A stretch of DNA of 64,000 bases, from sequence record NC_070882.1; one strand, 5' to 3'. Positions 55,880 through 63,188 of the stretch are shown here, in pieces; positions within the stretch are counted from its first letter, which is position 1; every line of letters starts with the position of its first letter. The notes beneath the pieces are model-generated. The model made no database searches. It had not been told where the DNA came from and saw only the letters and a list, made by a program, of their open reading frames with translations. The translations under genes and the position numbers were made by a program.

Positions 55880-57991
55880 ATGCAAAGTCTACCAAATGCC
55901 ATCCGTGAAATTAACCTGCGTTTGCTCGGTCACGCGGCAATTGATCCATATTACGGAACAACCTCCGCGGCACGCGGTGCCATGTTGCTGTCACATATTG
56001 GACAATCACCAGTAGTGGAAGGGAACGAGCCACGTCGGGTAATGGCGGGTATCGAAATGCGTTATGCTGAACATACCTTCGATATTCGTTTCCCAACGGA
56101 TTGCGTTGTTCTGAATATTATCCGTAAGTATCCCACTGGTGTGGGTCGTGGATCTATTCGACATAACCCCGTAACTACGATCGTGTATGAGGAGTATTAC
56201 GACGAGTTTAAACGAATCGGTGTTATCCATGTACCAGAGTACCTAAGCTTTCACCAGGACTTTGGATTCAAACTTGAGAAGCAGAAAGATGTATGGAATA
56301 ACCTTGCCGTTGGTGAGATGTTTGCCAAAGATACGGTTATTGCACAATCCACAACTGTAAAAGAAAATGGTCTTCTGGGCATGGGCGTTAACGCCACCGT
56401 GATGTTCGGTTCTATGCCTGGTACTATTGAGGACGGTTTCGTATTCTGCGATGAGTTCCTTCGGGAGAAGATGGCTCCTCGTACTTATACAACCGCTACT
56501 GGCGGAGCTGGTAAGAAAGCATTCTTCCTCAATATGTACGGTGACGATAAAAACATCAAGCTCTTCCCTGATATCGGTGAACGTATTCGTGATGATGGTG
56601 TTATCTTCGCTGTTCGAGACCTTGACGACGATCTCTCGCCAGCTGAAATGACTCCACGTGCATTGCGCACTCTCGATCGTACGTTTGACCGTGCCGTAAT
56701 TGGTGATCCGGGCGCAATCATTAAAGACATCAAAGTGTATTGGGATGATCGTCAAAATCCATCTTATACTCCGAGTGGTATGGATGGACAACTGCGGAAG
56801 TACTATGACGCACTGGCGTCGTATTACCGTGAGATCATCAAGGTATATAAAGGTCTGTCTGCCCGCCGTAAAGATCGCCTCCATATGACCGAGGAGTTTC
56901 GTCAACTTGTAGTAGAAGCGATGATCTATCTGCCTCAAGCCGAAGGTCAACGTAAGCTGACCCGTATGTATCGACTGGATCAACTTGATGAATGGCGTGT
57001 TGAAATCACCTATGAATCGATTAAAGAACCGGGCGGTGCATATAAAGCCACTGATTTCCATGGCGGCAAAGGTGTCGTTTGTAAGATCATGAAGCGAGCA
57101 GATATGCCTCGTGACGTGAATGGTAACGTTGCAGATGTTGTTATCTTTGGCGGCTCGACTATGCGTCGTTCTAACTATGGTCGTATCTATGAACATGGTT
57201 TCGGTGCAGCATCTCGCGATCTGGCTCAACGTCTCAGAGTTGAATGTGGGCTAGAGCGTCATGGTTCCTATGAACTTGACGACGTTGTAAACCATATCAG
57301 AAACAATCCTGACTTTATCAAGTATGCCTTTAATGAGCTGCTTGATTTCTATGCAATCGTTACTCCGACAATGCATGGAATGGTTAAGGATCACCCGAAT
57401 CCGATTCAACATGTATCGCATGTATTGAGAGATGGTTTTGCGTACTTGTATTCCCCGGTTGATGACCCCGTACATTTGCCGACAGCAAGTAACCAAATCC
57501 TTAATTCTCGCTTCTGTCCAACATATGCACCGGTGACATATCGAGATCAAACAGGTAAAGAAGTAACGACAAAAGACCCAATGTTGCTTGGCCCGCTATA
57601 CATGATGCTGCTCGAAAAGATCGGTGAAGACTGGTCGGCCGTAGCATCGGTGAAGACTCAACAGTTTGGTCTACCATCGAAACTGAATAACTCCGATCGG
57701 TCCAGTACACCTGGTCGAGAAAGCGCTATTCGTTCGTTTGGTGAATCTGAGACTCGATCTTACAACTGTACGGTCGGTGCACTACCCACGGTAGAACTGT
57801 TGGATCAAACCAATAACCCCGAAGCACACATTGCTGTGATCAACTCTATCCTCACTGCGGATAAACCGTCCAACATTGAGAAAGCAGTTGATCGTTCCAA
57901 AATCCCATTCGGTAACTCCCGACCAGTTGGACTTCTGTCGCACTTGTTGGAATGCCGTGGATTGCAGTTCAAGTACGCGCCCGGTGTTTAA
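55880..57991 (+). CDS. nvRNAP beta C-terminal subunit (phiKZ gp71-73-like), uninterrupted
   Basis: TIEDG, DFHGGKG (HGNKG-like), SFGESETR; 703 aa. Confidence 0.9.
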   Translation: MQSLPNAIREINLRLLGHAAIDPYYGTTSAARGAMLLSHIGQSPVVEGNEPRRVMAGIEMRYAEHTFDIRFPTDCVVLNIIRKYPTGVGRGSIRHNPVTTIVYEEYYDEFKRIGVIHVPEYLSFHQDFGFKLEKQKDVWNNLAVGEMFAKDTVIAQSTTVKENGLLGMGVNATVMFGSMPGTIEDGFVFCDEFLREKMAPRTYTTATGGAGKKAFFLNMYGDDKNIKLFPDIGERIRDDGVIFAVRDLDDDLSPAEMTPRALRTLDRTFDRAVIGDPGAIIKDIKVYWDDRQNPSYTPSGMDGQLRKYYDALASYYREIIKVYKGLSARRKDRLHMTEEFRQLVVEAMIYLPQAEGQRKLTRMYRLDQLDEWRVEITYESIKEPGGAYKATDFHGGKGVVCKIMKRADMPRDVNGNVADVVIFGGSTMRRSNYGRIYEHGFGAASRDLAQRLRVECGLERHGSYELDDVVNHIRNNPDFIKYAFNELLDFYAIVTPTMHGMVKDHPNPIQHVSHVLRDGFAYLYSPVDDPVHLPTASNQILNSRFCPTYAPVTYRDQTGKEVTTKDPMLLGPLYMMLLEKIGEDWSAVASVKTQQFGLPSKLNNSDRSSTPGRESAIRSFGESETRSYNCTVGALPTVELLDQTNNPEAHIAVINSILTADKPSNIEKAVDRSKIPFGNSRPVGLLSHLLECRGLQFKYAPGV

Positions 57992-58017
57992 CCGGGCTGC
58001 ACGCCAAGAGGTAAATA

Positions 58018-59991
58018 ATGAATCAGTATAAAGCACGTGATCTTCTCAATATGAGTTACGATGAACTCTGGGCGATTCCAAGTGAATGGCATGAGATCAT
58101 CTTTGATGACGGGGAGAAACTCTATGCAAAAGATCGGATCACCAAGCTGTCGGTTCTGCTCTGGTATCCACTGAAAGCTTTCCCTGATGCCCCGGTTCTG
58201 AAAGATTACCATCTGGCATCTACTCGGGTTACCTCTAAATCTCTTGTGAAATACCTGAACAAAGTTATTTGGGGTATTCATGCATGGAGTGGTGAACAGA
58301 TCGATCCAGAGGTTTTGGCTAAACTGGCTATTGAAGGAAAGAATTGGCTTTATAATGAAACCACTACTCGACTGAGTGCTTACATTGCAACCCTGTCGAT
58401 CTTTGACATTATGGAAGTGTACAATCACCCGGCAGTTAGAAAGGCTAACCAAGATGTACAGCCTACTACGTACGGGATTGAAAACATTTCTTACGGGATG
58501 ATCAAAGAAGCATTCAACGACGAAACACAGTTCCGTGGTAACAGCATCATTGAGGGCCTGCGCTCGGGTACGCAGAAAATGGAGCAATTGCTTCAGGCAT
58601 ACGGACCACGTGGTTTCCCGACAGACATTAACTCTGATATTTTCAGTGAGCCGTGTACCACTGGTTACATTGATGGTATTTGGGGTTTGTATGAAAACAT
58701 GATCGAATCCCGATCGGGTACCAAAGCTCTGTTGTATAACAAAGAGCTACTGCGTGTAACCGAGTATTTCAACCGGAAGTCTCAGTTGATTGCTCAGTAT
58801 GTACAGAACCTACACACTGGTGATTGTAATGGTCACTTGATCGACTTCCCTGTAATGCAGGGTACGTTGAAAGCTCTTCGTGGCAAGTACTATCTGAACG
58901 AACAGACAGGTCAACTGGACTGGCTGAAAGGGGATGAGAAACATCTTATCGGTAAAAAGATTAAGATGCGTTCTATTTTGGGATGTGTGCATCCGGATCC
59001 TCAGGGTGTATGTTCGCGGTGTTATGGGCGACTAAGTTTCTCTATTCCAAAAGGAACTGTCATTGGTCAGGTATCGGCTGTATCCATGGGTGACAAAATC
59101 ACTTCTGCGGTATTGTCGACAAAACACACTGATGCAACCTCGGCTGTAGAACAGTATCAGATTGGTGGCGTCGAAGCTAAGTACCTGCGAACTGGATCTG
59201 CGGCTGAAACTCTTTATCTGAAGAAAGAACTCTCGGGTAAAGGTTTCCGCTTGATGATCGGTCGTAACGAAGCCCAGAACCTGGCTGATATTCTGATGAT
59301 CGATGACCTTAGTGCATATCCAGCACCGAGTGCTTCTGAACTGACCCGTATTGGTTTGGTACGGACGGTTGATGGAGTAGACGAAGGCGATGTATTGACG
59401 GTGTCGCTGTATAACCGTCGAGCTAGTCTATCGACTGAAATGCTGCAACATATCAAACGTGTACGTTGGGAACTTGACGCTCGTGATAATATCGTGATCG
59501 ATATGGCCGGGTTTGACTTTGCCCTGCCGTTCCTGACGTTGCCTAATAAGCACGTAAACATGTACGAAGTGATGAAGCGTATTCAGTCATTCCTGCACTC
59601 TGGTAGTGATACTGAAGGGTCTAAACTGAGCTCAGATAAGGTAGGTTTTACTAGCAAGACTTATCTTAAGAACTACAAAGACCCAGTTGATGCTCTGGCA
59701 GCCACTGTGTCGCTGTTGAATGAGAAGTTCTCTTTGAATGCCGTTCACTGTGAGGTTCTGGTTTATGCTATGATGGTGCGCTCTATCGCTGAACGCGATT
59801 ATCGTCTGCCTAAGCCGGGTATTACGGGTCAGTTTGAAAAATACAACAAACTGATGATGTCCCGTTCTCTTGCTGGTGCGATGTCGTTTGAGAAGCAACA
59901 TGAGCCGTTGAACAATCCTGGCAGTTTCCTCTACACACTGAGGAATGACCATCCCTACGATCTTGCGGTCATGGGAGGTAAGCTGCTCTAA
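58018..59991 (+). CDS. nvRNAP beta' C-terminal subunit (phiKZ gp74-like)
   Basis: HTGDC, RSILGC, CSRCYG, LSTKH, MSFEKQ; 657 aa. Confidence 0.9.
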   Translation: MNQYKARDLLNMSYDELWAIPSEWHEIIFDDGEKLYAKDRITKLSVLLWYPLKAFPDAPVLKDYHLASTRVTSKSLVKYLNKVIWGIHAWSGEQIDPEVLAKLAIEGKNWLYNETTTRLSAYIATLSIFDIMEVYNHPAVRKANQDVQPTTYGIENISYGMIKEAFNDETQFRGNSIIEGLRSGTQKMEQLLQAYGPRGFPTDINSDIFSEPCTTGYIDGIWGLYENMIESRSGTKALLYNKELLRVTEYFNRKSQLIAQYVQNLHTGDCNGHLIDFPVMQGTLKALRGKYYLNEQTGQLDWLKGDEKHLIGKKIKMRSILGCVHPDPQGVCSRCYGRLSFSIPKGTVIGQVSAVSMGDKITSAVLSTKHTDATSAVEQYQIGGVEAKYLRTGSAAETLYLKKELSGKGFRLMIGRNEAQNLADILMIDDLSAYPAPSASELTRIGLVRTVDGVDEGDVLTVSLYNRRASLSTEMLQHIKRVRWELDARDNIVIDMAGFDFALPFLTLPNKHVNMYEVMKRIQSFLHSGSDTEGSKLSSDKVGFTSKTYLKNYKDPVDALAATVSLLNEKFSLNAVHCEVLVYAMMVRSIAERDYRLPKPGITGQFEKYNKLMMSRSLAGAMSFEKQHEPLNNPGSFLYTLRNDHPYDLAVMGGKLL

Positions 59992-60047: not shown

Positions 60048-60485
60048 ATGCTACCGATACTCAAGGCTGAGCGCTATACGCATGGTGTCCGACTATCTGG
60101 GTATACTCGGGAAACGTTCGCTAAGATGCAGGGGTTTCTTGAAGGGCTTTCTTTGAAAGAACCTAAGAAGATCCCTGGTAATCGAATCATCATGGAACTC
60201 AAGAAAAAGTACTATGGTTGTTTCGAAGATCTATCAGAGACTTATATCCACCGAAATTCACTAGAAGACCTGATCGGTTATCTGGAGAACAAAGGTATCC
60301 CAAGAGAACGAGTCGAGATTGAGGATATCCCTGTCCCTAAAGCAGCAACTGCTGTTTACGAAATGTACAAGAAATACGTACTCCGGGATTATCAGGAAAT
60401 CATCCGTGAAGATATTTTGCGTGATTGGTTACATTCTGCACGGGTAGACTTGCAAACGGGAAAGGGAAAACCCTCACGAGCCTAG
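60048..60485 (+). CDS. SF2 helicase, N-terminal part (Q motif and start of Walker A)
   Basis: LRDYQ Q motif, then LQTGKGK, before leaving frame. Confidence 0.85.
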   Translation: MLPILKAERYTHGVRLSGYTRETFAKMQGFLEGLSLKEPKKIPGNRIIMELKKKYYGCFEDLSETYIHRNSLEDLIGYLENKGIPRERVEIEDIPVPKAATAVYEMYKKYVLRDYQEIIREDILRDWLHSARVDLQTGKGKPSRA

Positions 60486-61582
60486 CGTCCTTGGCTTCGA
60501 TGGGGGTAAGATGTGTTGTGATGGTTCCTCCCAAGTATTTTGGTATTTGGATTGAAGCTCTTCAGAACACTTACAAGGACATTGCCCAGAGATACATTAC
60601 CATCTCGGGTTCCGCAGAACTCCAAAAACTAATAGATCGCGGCGTCGAAAACGATCTTGAAGGGATTGACGTTATTGTAATCTCTTCTACTACCTACCGG
60701 GCATATCTAGATAACTTTGAGAAGTATGGTAACCGACTCCATGAGCTCGGATACAATGTACCTCCACCCCGGTTCCACGAAGCAATACAAGCAGGACTGC
60801 AAATTAACGACGAGATTCAAGAAGATCCAGGACTAACCTTCCGTATCGATATTTACTCTAACATTAATAAGCAGATCTATTTGTCGGCTACTCCCTACAC
60901 AGGGAACGCCTACGTGACGAAGATGATTGACAAGATGTTGCCAGCAGAGACCATGTGTCGCCTGCCCAACTACGATGTCTACATCAACTGCATGGGGCTA
61001 CTCTACACTGAACCAAAGATCAAACCGAAGGATTATCTTACACCGTTTAAGAATACGTATAACCATGCGCGTTACGAAACGGTAATGATGAAAGATCCTA
61101 AACGGATGGATGACTATTTCAGGATGGTCGGTCGTATTGCTGAGGGCGTGTATGTGAAAGATCGGTTACCTGGTCAGAAACTACTCCTCCTTTGTGCAAC
61201 GGTCGCCTTTATTGAAAAACTGGTTAAATATCTGAAGACTAAGTTCCCTGACCTTGTGGTTAACGGACATGTCTCAGGTTGCAGTTATGAACAGTTACTT
61301 AAGAACGACATTACGGTGTCCACTATTAAGTCATCTGGTACAGGTGTAGACATCCCTAATCTTCGTGAGGTAGTATTGTTACAAGCTACCGATTCCAAGA
61401 AAGATAACATTCAAATTCTGGGTCGTCTCCGTAAACTGAAAGACTTCCAAGATGTGGTACCTAGGTTGACCTACCTAGTGTGTGAAAACATACCGCACCA
61501 CGTGAGATATGCTCGGAATAAAAGTGAGCATTTCGCCGGTAAAACTCTTTCAATGGTACTCAGACGGATAGCCATGCACTAA
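60458..61582 (+). CDS. SF2 helicase, C-terminal part in the -1 frame (phiKZ gp75-like)
   Basis: GKGKT Walker A, NDEIQ Walker B, LSATP motif III, SGTGVDIP, QILGRLR motif VI. No good own start. Confidence 0.85.
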   Translation, partial: GKGKTLTSLASLASMGVRCVVMVPPKYFGIWIEALQNTYKDIAQRYITISGSAELQKLIDRGVENDLEGIDVIVISSTTYRAYLDNFEKYGNRLHELGYNVPPPRFHEAIQAGLQINDEIQEDPGLTFRIDIYSNINKQIYLSATPYTGNAYVTKMIDKMLPAETMCRLPNYDVYINCMGLLYTEPKIKPKDYLTPFKNTYNHARYETVMMKDPKRMDDYFRMVGRIAEGVYVKDRLPGQKLLLLCATVAFIEKLVKYLKTKFPDLVVNGHVSGCSYEQLLKNDITVSTIKSSGTGVDIPNLREVVLLQATDSKKDNIQILGRLRKLKDFQDVVPRLTYLVCENIPHHVRYARNKSEHFAGKTLSMVLRRIAMH

Positions 61583-61586
61583 TAAC

Positions 61587-61610
61587 AGCCCACCTTCGGG
61601 TGGGCTTTAT
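61587..61610 (+). terminator. Terminator
   Basis: AGCCCACC-ttcg-GGTGGGCT-TTAT. Confidence 0.8.
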
Positions 61611-61629: not shown

Positions 61630-61902
61630 ATGTCACCTGTGATCCTACTTATTGTTTCACCGATATTAACCGTCGTGATGTATGTATTGGAACTGAAGCT
61701 CCGTGAGGAGTACAGAACGGCGCACTATAAACACTTGTTACGTTTAGCCGGACAGAACATCAAACCGAAGTTAATAAAGCAGTCTATAGAGTATTCTGAG
61801 ATTGCATTGACCCGATTGATCCATACGTTCGTAAAGAAATGTTACTTGGTATTAGCTTACTTTACGCTGACCATGTTCGTAATCGCTGCATCCCACATCT
61901 AA
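61630..61902 (+). CDS. Small 2-TM membrane protein
   Basis: GAGGA RBS before ATG 61630; hydrophobic N- and C-terminal segments. Confidence 0.7.
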   Translation: MSPVILLIVSPILTVVMYVLELKLREEYRTAHYKHLLRLAGQNIKPKLIKQSIEYSEIALTRLIHTFVKKCYLVLAYFTLTMFVIAASHI

Positions 61903-61912
61903 GGAATTACAA

Positions 61913-62215
61913 ATGAATACATCTCCCGCTGCTCTCCCTTTCCCCAACCTAATGTTCCTCCTTCTGGTAATTGTTATAGCAATTCCCGTTGTGGCATACA
62001 TCTATCTACCTTATGCTGCACTGGCTATTTCAACAGGTGTACTAGCTGCATGTACCTGTGTTTTAGGTATCGGTAATGCACTAGTTGATCCAAATGCCTG
62101 CGATACACCTAAACACTGGAGAGAGTATCGTTATTATCTAATCGCTGGATTTGGGTTCTTCACTGTTGCTATGTTCGCAGCAGCTAATCTCAAATATGCA
62201 TTTAAGTTCATTTAA
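61913..62215 (+). CDS. Small 3-TM membrane protein
   Basis: AAGGA RBS; three hydrophobic stretches. Confidence 0.7.
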   Translation: MNTSPAALPFPNLMFLLLVIVIAIPVVAYIYLPYAALAISTGVLAACTCVLGIGNALVDPNACDTPKHWREYRYYLIAGFGFFTVAMFAAANLKYAFKFI

Positions 62216-62219
62216 AGCC

Positions 62220-62227
62220 TATATTAC
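62220..62227 (+). promoter_or_regulatory. Early promoter
   Basis: TTTAAAGCCTATATTAC. Confidence 0.75.
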
Positions 62228-62262
62228 AACTGTGAATATACACCCACATAAAGGACAATGTA

Positions 62263-62457
62263 ATGGCTATTATCACCAATGTATTTGCTTTCGCTATCAT
62301 CACTCTGTTCATCGTCTTTTTCCTGAAACAGGGACTTGCGGTCATGGGTGTCAAAACGAACCACCTGCCGATTAAACTGGCTAAAGCTTTCAATGCATCT
62401 GGTCCTTTGGCAGCAATCCTTCTTGCCGTATACTTGATCATGGCAACCTTTTTATAA
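62263..62457 (+). CDS. Small 2-TM membrane protein
   Basis: AAGGA RBS; 64 aa. Confidence 0.7.
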   Translation: MAIITNVFAFAIITLFIVFFLKQGLAVMGVKTNHLPIKLAKAFNASGPLAAILLAVYLIMATFL

Positions 62458-62477
62458 CATCTTTCTGAGTTGATACC

Positions 62478-62666
62478 ATGGGATGGATTGTACTGATACT
62501 CACCTTCTTCGCTTCTCTTACGGTTGGAGGTGTAATGACTTTCTATGGCTTGGTAGCTAGTAGTAAAACCTTTTCAGATAGAATCTCTATGGTTCTATTT
62601 GGCGTAGTTATTATTGCTATCACCGGCTATAGTGGATATCATTTATTCGACATGCTTCCAAAATAG
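62478..62666 (+). CDS. Small 2-TM membrane protein
   Basis: 62 aa, hydrophobic hairpin. Confidence 0.65.
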   Translation: MGWIVLILTFFASLTVGGVMTFYGLVASSKTFSDRISMVLFGVVIIAITGYSGYHLFDMLPK

Positions 62667-62674
62667 GAGTTAAC

Positions 62675-62935
62675 ATGGATTTGATGTTTACTAACCCAAT
62701 AGCGTTTATTTACGGGACACTTAGCTTTCCTGGACTACTGTTCATGACTGGCTATGCTGTATCGTGGTTGTTCGTAATGGGTGTATGCAAGTGGCTTCCT
62801 AATTGGAAGTACCTCTGCATGTTCCTCTGCGTCAGTTGGGCAATTAGCTTTGCGATTTATCTAGTAATGATCATTACGGCCCTGGTTAGCGTGTATACCC
62901 CTCTCCAGTTACCGCCGTGGACGCTCATGAACTAA
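62675..62935 (+). CDS. Small multi-TM membrane protein
   Basis: AGGAG RBS; 86 aa, almost entirely hydrophobic. Confidence 0.7.
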   Translation: MDLMFTNPIAFIYGTLSFPGLLFMTGYAVSWLFVMGVCKWLPNWKYLCMFLCVSWAISFAIYLVMIITALVSVYTPLQLPPWTLMN

Positions 62936-62948
62936 CAAGGAGTTAATC

Positions 62949-63188
62949 ATGGAAACCATCATGCTGATCTGGTGGATCTCTATTTCGATTATCGCTGGGT
63001 CCCTGTTCGTAGCAAAACTGGTAAAAGATAACGATGATGTTCGTCGAACTCGTTTACCAAAGAAAGATATCATCATGCTCGACCGCATTAATATGATTTG
63101 CACTGCTCTCATATGGGGAGCTGCTATCGTAGCGCTGATCACTCTCTTCTTGGGTGGTCTTTTCATGATGATTGAAGCACAAGTGTAA
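62949..63188 (+). CDS. Small 2-TM membrane protein
   Basis: AAGGAG RBS; 79 aa. Confidence 0.7.
   Translation: METIMLIWWISISIIAGSLFVAKLVKDNDDVRRTRLPKKDIIMLDRINMICTALIWGAAIVALITLFLGGLFMMIEAQV

Follow-up and report, generated by a model that had tools for sequence, protein, structure and literature searches.

The stretch of DNA analyzed here, called the window in the following, comprises the first 64 kb of Pseudomonas phage vB_PaeM_PS119XW (MN103543/NC_070882), a jumbo phage of P. aeruginosa; record coordinates and window coordinates are identical. On the + strand, the window contains a gene for an SF2 helicase which is distributed over two overlapping reading frames (Table 1). In the frame of the ATG at 60048, positions 60456–60473 read ACG GGA AAG GGA AAA CCC, and this frame encodes ...LRDYQ...VDLQT GKGK PSRA before it runs into a stop codon. 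When the same region is read one base back from 60458, the codons are GGG AAA GGG AAA ACC CTC, corresponding to GKGKTLTSLAS..., and the frame stays open for 374 codons. One peptide that is encoded in this -1 frame upstream of Met 60500 is, for example, TLTSLASLASMGVR. A complete Walker A motif exists only after the shift, whereby the LRDYQ motif belongs to the upstream frame and GKGKT and DEIQ belong to the -1 frame. The joined product has 137 + 374 = 511 aa, and intact orthologues have 510–511 aa. GenBank lists two function-less CDSs for the PS119XW helicase locus; the orthologue of phage HPP-Temi is a single ORF with a 1536-nt CDS, and the PhiPA3 orthologue is likewise a single ORF of the same size. 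A preliminary description, which was made from the letters of the window alone, had proposed an SF2 helicase that is split inside Walker A, two slippery heptamers with X-XXY-YYZ phasing, and a protein of about 511 aa as the result of a -1 slip. The split and the presence of both heptamers in phase with ATG 60048 were borne out, and the 511 aa agree with the length of the intact orthologues.

Table 1. Features of the helicase locus of PS119XW (window coordinates).
Feature	Position	Strand	Remarks
Entire recoded gene	60048..61582	+	Predicted XPB-like SF2 helicase; 511 aa given one -1 shift
0-frame ORF (ORF-up)	60048..60485	+	145-aa unshifted product from ATG 60048
Contents of ORF-up			N-terminal alpha/beta domain, Q-motif (LRDYQ) helix, RecA1 first strand, truncated P-loop, PSRA, stop; domain limits taken from the AF2 model of the PhiPA3 orthologue
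-1-frame ORF	60458..61582	+	Walker A GKGKT, motif II (DEIQ), second RecA lobe, stop TAA 61580-82
Slippery heptamer G_GGA_AAG (heptamer 1)	60458..60464	+	Proposed -1 shift site
Second heptamer G_GGA_AAA	60464..60470	+	PS119XW only; probably incidental
Stem-loop	60470..60507	+	Putative frameshift stimulator; 13 pairs, two bulges, starts 5 nt past heptamer 1
0-frame stop TAG	60483..60485	+	Six codons past heptamer 1

The gene is the orthologue of PhiPA3 gp068 (“RAD2/SF2 helicase”), 201phi2-1 gp131, and phiKZ gp075, and it is a core gene of the Chimalliviridae. Both pieces match PHROG 16 “DNA helicase” (8e-16 and 3e-26), and a match to Pfam Helicase_C reaches 17.9 bits, which is below the curated cut-off of 23.5. 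Since a sequence search of the PDB with the helicase gave no match, a fold search was needed. The AlphaFold model of the intact PhiPA3 orthologue (pLDDT 93) shows an N-terminal alpha/beta part (residues ~1–95), a Q-motif helix, strand 1, the P-loop at residues 137–141, and two RecA lobes. With this model, the best Foldseek match was XPB/Ssl2 of TFIIH (E 7e-15, TM 0.59), followed by T4 UvsW and archaeal XPB, which points to an XPB-like SF2 helicase. From the layout of the model it follows that the 145-aa product would correspond to the N-terminal domain plus the first RecA1 elements. XPB/Ssl2 (Rad25), archaeal XPB, and T4 UvsW likewise consist of an N-terminal alpha/beta domain and two RecA lobes, whereas their sequence identity to the phage helicase is only 11–15%. 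XPB/Ssl2 is the TFIIH translocase that opens promoters. The helicase gene directly follows two genes for RNA-polymerase beta/beta'-like subunits (55880–59991), with an Rpb2_6 match on 55880–57991. Together with the structural match to XPB/Ssl2, this neighborhood is a hint that the helicase may act in phage transcription and not in replication. In each of the 301 phage records with the helicase gene, it is present in a single copy and at one place, and no paralogue that would make it redundant was found in them. In phiKZ, knock-down of the orthologue lowered the ChmA levels and left plaque counts (PFU) and CFU unchanged (PMC12571901), so that the phage might cope without the gene under laboratory conditions. 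The result is compatible with a gene that can be lowered in dose, and it also leaves room for a pseudogene.

The surroundings of the locus show some further features. A perfect 8-bp GC-rich stem-loop (61587–61606) starts 5 nt past the helicase stop; its T-run on the + strand is poor, and its probable role is that of a transcript end or of a stabiliser. Behind it, six or seven small ORFs on the + strand (61630–63188; 62–100 aa) encode strongly hydrophobic, membrane-protein-like products, and the set of these ORFs differs between PS119XW, HPP-Temi, and PhiPA3. No tRNA genes were found in the 64-kb window.

The shift in the DNA is real. A stretch of 160 nt around the site is identical in phiLBG22, phiHQ, BRkr, HHBS36_1, PA1C, and PS119XW, i.e. 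in six isolates from Poland, France, Pakistan, Japan, Germany, and Russia (one source: PMC11591403), and the seven GenBank records of these isolates agree on the site. The same holds for three further DNA runs, one of which represents a somewhat more divergent strain and one of which has Nextera-type adaptor ends: their contigs cross the site without an indel, with assembler word depths from 21 to 1400. At the site, the six isolates and the three runs are concordant and show no extra base, whereby the further runs were compared at the level of contigs. A strain-specific, non-synonymous difference in the N-terminal part was seen at window position 60369, where PS119XW alone has an A (Lys108) and the five other GenBank isolates as well as the three runs have a G (Glu).

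In order to find further split genes, the 145-aa ORF was chosen as the query, because a protein database search returns only proteins of similar length and full-length helicases drop out in this way. This yielded three proteins of 142–145 aa with 73–74% identity, which end in LQTGKGRPFRP, LQTGKEKLSPV, and LQTGKERP, respectively. A profile search added a fifth lineage (L032), whose N-terminal part is far more diverged and which shares 63% identity over the whole protein with its nearest relative, L022. The four further lineages are all metagenomic (L027, L028/L029, L030, and L032) and have ~40–74% amino acid identity in the N-terminal part. Their contigs carry RNA-polymerase subunit genes, then a short ORF, and then a -1-frame ORF of 349–355 aa, and the same one-base shift is found at the same spot in all five lineages. 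L027, L028, L030, and L032 derive from GCA_011800935.1, SRR28403170/77, SRR25400529, and SRR30140743. The preliminary description had looked to close relatives for a shared split, and such sharing was found in five other isolates, which are identical, and in four divergent lineages with the same shift, while the nearest relatives are intact. Pattern scans of viral, metagenome, and genome contigs for more split loci gave only the L027 contig again, and a scan of IMG/VR proteins gave intact genes only. Two groups of homologues deserve separate mention. P0005, P0006, and P0007 are fragments of in-frame homologues (60% identity) that are listed at NCBI as partial Klebsiella pneumoniae proteins from 259–377-bp contigs, and they are probably jumbo-phage DNA within bacterial assemblies. 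The 139-aa homologue P0011 (L033:3300-3446, JGI 3300014203 contig) diverges past residue 113 into a GC-rich contig end, which looks chimeric or mis-assembled and not like a further recoding site.

In a maximum-likelihood phylogeny of the helicase, no fewer than four changes of state (five with L032) are required to account for the split genes, and these are forced by well-supported branches. When the split sequences were constrained to a single clade, the likelihood was 450 log units worse (AU test, p 8e-44), so that one ancestral origin as a single clade was rejected. There may have been one old gain with many reversions or five gains. Every split lineage sits at a tip of the tree and has a close relative with an intact gene, the intact nearest relatives being HPP-Temi, 201phi2-1, and Viktualia. 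The PS119XW species is sister to HPP-Temi and L027 is sister to 201phi2-1 (L021). The transfer of a cassette with the shifted region between lineages was also rejected, because the protein just past the site follows its own lineage in each case, e.g. with TLSALAALAR in both L027 and 201phi2-1.

The heptamer G_GGA_AAG is invariant and phased to the 0 frame in all five split lineages, where the break always reads ACG GGA AAG G, and the flanks are ~60–80% identical. It is absent from every intact relative in the comparison (HPP-Temi, PhiPA3, 201phi2-1, Viktualia, and 16 IMG/VR loci); each of them has one base more and usually reads ACN GGT AAR GGN. The lost base is therefore not necessarily an A of the A4 run, as it had been taken to be, since adding one T to the split allele gives the intact sequence of L013, ACG GGT AAA GGG AAA ACG. 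Immediately before the site, Thr is encoded by ACG in 5/5 split lineages vs. 2/15 distinct intact sequences (hypergeometric count, p ~0.001), and the final G of this codon is the base that is needed for re-pairing of the P-site tRNA. It counts against a programmed frameshift that deletion of one base in ACG GGT AAA G automatically yields part of it. The string GGGAAAG occurs 10 times in the window vs. 6.2 times expected and alone is not rarer than chance, so that the significance of the heptamer has to be derived from the comparison with relatives. In E. coli, G_GGA_AAG has been described as highly shift-prone (PMC5009743). The 0-frame stop lies 3–6 codons past the heptamer in the other split lineages. 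The second heptamer behaves differently from the first. Nearby wobble positions vary (the next two codons of the -1 frame are GGG/GGA and then AAA/AAG), and therefore the second heptamer is not conserved: L027, L028, L030, and L032 have GGGAAGA, GGAAAAA, or GGAAAGA at its position. Furthermore, it overlaps the first base of the stem and has zero spacer before the hairpin. It was rejected as a functional site for its lack of conservation, which leaves heptamer 1 alone. A conserved Shine-Dalgarno sequence 10–14 nt upstream of the heptamer was not found across the split lineages; AAGGAG occurs only in L032, where it ends 16 nt before the heptamer. Such an upstream stimulator marks the dnaX subtype only and not the wider class of -1 frameshifts. 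An Rfam search gave no match at the site.

Downstream of the heptamer, PS119XW has a hairpin of -19.2 kcal/mol (fold; range quoted -18 to -19) with a z-score of -2.5, whose apical part contains the 0-frame stop. With this stability and the 5-nt spacer, the hairpin is strong, in contrast to the weak one that had been noted at first. For comparison, each gene was scanned at every third position for the best hairpin that starts 5–8 nt downstream. Hairpins with spacers of 5–6 nt and -11.9 to -18.2 kcal/mol (constrained scan) are predicted in all five split lineages, and the hairpin at the site ranks first of ~450 positions in PS119XW, L027, L030, and L032 and within the top 5% in L028. These hairpins align in register, and 7 of the 14 consensus pairs are changed on both sides in a compensatory manner. 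In the covariation analysis, 82.9% of the cells were paired vs. 70.5% in shuffles (0/500 shuffles as high), and once the partner was slid, at most 59% of the cells were paired. The hairpin is missing in the intact sisters HPP-Temi (-4.5 kcal/mol) and L020 (about -6 to -7 kcal/mol), and the intact sister 201phi2-1 was counted as being without it, with -8.3 kcal/mol in the 42-nt fold and -13.1 kcal/mol in the constrained scan. A sign test of shift vs. hairpin on independent pairs, of which there are only five, was not significant (median p 0.25) and never went in the opposite direction. Strong (top-1%) hairpins were also observed at the same place in the intact genes of PhiPA3 (L003, about 1962–2012), L022, and L010; such genes may have reverted while retaining the structure, or their lineages may be pre-adapted to tolerate the shift. 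Several bases of the PS119XW hairpin are common to PhiPA3 and changed in HPP-Temi, a hint of a possible reversion in HPP-Temi.

On the basis of these comparisons, the locus probably carries a -1 programmed ribosomal frameshift signal within the P-loop codons of the only XPB-like SF2 helicase gene of the phage, and we put the probability of this reading at roughly 0.75. The features that are usually looked for in -1 frameshifting are present: a phased heptamer at the ORF overlap, an overlapping -1 ORF without its own start for the conserved part, a predicted structure within ~5–9 nt, and a signal that is conserved across lineages together with trans-frame selection, whereby this conservation extends across separate tips and not over one old clade. 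Ribosomes would initiate at ATG 60048 and, when positioned on G_GGA_AAG (60458–60464), would encounter the hairpin at 60470–60507 5 nt further on. A fraction of them would slip back by one base, with tRNA-Gly moving from GGA to GGG and tRNA-Lys from AAG to AAA, and would then read GKGKTL... and finish the 511-aa helicase. The remaining ribosomes would go on to the TAG at 60483–60485 and release the 145-aa N-terminal fragment. This would be hairpin-stimulated frameshifting of the dnaX or lambda G-GT type, in which the full-length helicase is the shifted product. That the event takes place on the ribosome is what we infer from the DNA of the five lineages, and the shift may serve to keep the helicase dose low or to fix the ratio between the short and the long product. 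The programmed frameshift with a 511-aa and a 145-aa product that the preliminary description had suggested has thus gained comparative support from five lineages with the shift, the heptamer, the hairpin, and selection on the -1 frame, while the parts on an artefact, on the second heptamer, and on a weak hairpin did not hold. The runs labelled “RNA?” contained 9–14% of the sampled words, and in the one run that was aligned, coverage was limited to 60772–61013 and did not reach the site. In the literature, we found neither a proteomics paper on these phages nor a report of the proposed helicase frameshift, which is apparently undescribed and unannotated.

A small chance, which we consider decidedly unlikely, is that the gene is an inactivated pseudogene, i.e. 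that the loss of one base destroyed a helicase which the phage can do without, and that decay of the downstream frame is still to come. This would be in line with the position of all split lineages on terminal branches next to intact relatives and with the phiKZ075 knock-down, which had no effect on PFU (PMC12571901). However, it would require five independent events at the same base and none elsewhere in ~1.5 kb of 29 loci, each of them with an ACG codon before the shift and a top-ranked hairpin after it, in the sole copy of a core gene and fixed in isolates from six countries. In the 29 loci examined, no further stops, indels, or frame breaks were found elsewhere in the gene, and the -1 frame is open over 372–376 codons across the split lineages. 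Nonsynonymous to synonymous changes (N:S) in the -1 frame of the split branches amount to 1:42 in PS119XW, 0–2:36–40 in L027, and 2:32 in L028, which matches the intact sister branches. If the breaks are very recent, as they could be since the split lineages are tips, these ratios say little about the period after the shift and have limited power. Judging from these counts, the -1 frame is under strong purifying selection. Within the PS119XW species, the downstream part has five SNPs (four synonymous ones and one E-to-D exchange), whereby the diversity of ~0.2% is too low for decay to show. A dead recent mutation had initially been ranked as an equally good explanation; it is unlikely given the divergent lineages with the same signal and the N:S values.

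The same protein would also result if the phage or host RNA polymerase added a base at GGGAAAGGG, so that some of the mRNAs would be in frame. Known transcriptional slippage uses homopolymers of ~7–9 or more bases. The runs at the PS119XW site are only G3, A3, G3, and A4, and elsewhere A3 is followed by GGAAAG or GGAAAAA. Moreover, slippage of the polymerase has no need for a conserved and phased X_XXY_YYZ heptamer with a hairpin at ribosomal spacing, and we regard such a transcriptional repair as very unlikely.

Equally improbable in our opinion is a genuinely split gene, in which the two polypeptides would be made separately, the second one from a downstream start at TTG 60425 or ATG 60500, and would assemble non-covalently. 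The GenBank annotators call two CDSs, and the TTG at 60425 indeed lies in the -1 frame of PS119XW, 11 codons ahead of Walker A, but no evident Shine-Dalgarno sequence precedes it by inspection of the sequence. The earlier statement that no usable start exists before Walker A has to be modified for PS119XW in view of this TTG, and it applies without restriction to L027 and L030. There, the -1 frame is closed by a stop 5 (L027) and 3 (L030) codons before the GGG with no start codon in between, so that Walker A can be translated only by ribosomes that come from the upstream frame. With the annotated ATG start the P-loop would be lost, yet the 14 codons from the heptamer (GGG 60458) to the first downstream ATG are conserved on the protein level in the -1 frame only, as GKGK(T/S)L.... 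In addition, the RecA1 core itself would be cut, at a point between strand 1 and the P-loop. An artefact of sequencing or assembly by which a base was dropped in the G/A-rich run had been considered equally good as an explanation, but despite the short homopolymer runs around the site and the further runs being seen as contigs only, its chance is negligible and it was rejected, because seven GenBank records from six isolates and three further runs concur, PhiPA3 has A4 runs at the equivalent place and yet reads in frame, and the co-occurring ACG codon and hairpin would be left without explanation.

The proposed frameshift is a fresh instance of a known mechanism. With dnaX of E. coli (tau/gamma) it shares the -1 heptamer ending in A_AAG, a hairpin ~6 nt downstream, and a bacterial-type ribosome; both genes encode P-loop ATPases of DNA metabolism with two products that have a common N-terminus. 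In contrast to the phage helicase, which needs the shift for the full-length product, dnaX yields the full-length protein in the 0 frame and the short one by the shift. Its upstream Shine-Dalgarno stimulator has no conserved counterpart in the phage gene, and the site of the latter lies inside the Walker A codons. The lambda G/GT frameshift of the tail-assembly chaperones is not known to need a strong downstream structure and is deeply conserved and syntenic. It uses the identical G_GGA_AAG, is also phage-encoded, and gives a shift-dependent long product, but it belongs to another gene class, and the helicase signal comes and goes among close relatives. A third case is the “savior indel” in the thymidine kinase of herpes simplex virus, which is compensated by frameshifting (Atkins et al., 2016, PMC5009743). 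Here too, a one-base indel hits an enzyme gene and enough of the enzyme is recovered by frameshifting at the mutated run, whereas the phage site combines a canonical phased heptamer with a hairpin of its own, has become fixed in the species, and occurs in five natural lineages. What is unusual about the phage site is its location within the catalytic P-loop codons and its recurrence among close in-frame relatives.

The Walker A codons of this helicase family are also a hot spot for insertions. About a third of the cluster representatives (~20/62) carry an insert of 230–350 aa exactly between GKGK and T, among them the IMG/VR contigs L024 (1445-3598) and L025 and the proteins P0009, P0010, P0012, P0013, P0015, P0016, P0022, P0025, P0026, P0029, P0036, P0041, P0051, P0058, P0059, P0062, and P0067. 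Three of the four inserts scanned (L024, P0015, and P0036) have LAGLIDADG and Hom_end domains. Since the inserts frequently begin with A, G, S, or D and not with C, they look like class-3-like inteins. The frameshift site lies ~10 nt upstream of the insertion point (GKGK|T), and no intein was found in the split lineages. Intein-bearing and split alleles are thus alike in the interruption of the same few Walker A codons and differ in that the former are repaired by protein splicing and not by a change of the reading frame. Because of this proximity, the shift could protect the allele from intein homing. It would then be a repeatedly selected “savior indel” which displaces the halves of the homing site relative to each other and makes the allele immune to intein invasion, while frameshifting keeps the protein unchanged. 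We consider this idea unlikely, but as the shift coincides with the intein hot spot, recoding may be tied to a conflict with a selfish element. If this were true, recoding would be an escape on the nucleic acid level from the inteins of co-infecting phages, and the gains and losses across the tree would track the intein conflict.

For the annotation of nucleus-forming jumbo phages, the frameshift reading would mean that a core gene is filed as two hypothetical proteins and should be treated as one recoded gene, and this gap spans a whole species of P. aeruginosa phages that are candidates for therapy. It would provide a well-supported candidate for -1 frameshifting beyond tail chaperones, dnaX, and insertion sequences, in which, unusually, the active-site loop of the enzyme would be made only by shifted ribosomes. 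Comprising five or more separate lineages and their nearest, in-frame relatives, the helicase genes would form a natural series for the gain and loss of recoding signals, and this series would also bear on the dose of the XPB-like helicase that the phage needs.
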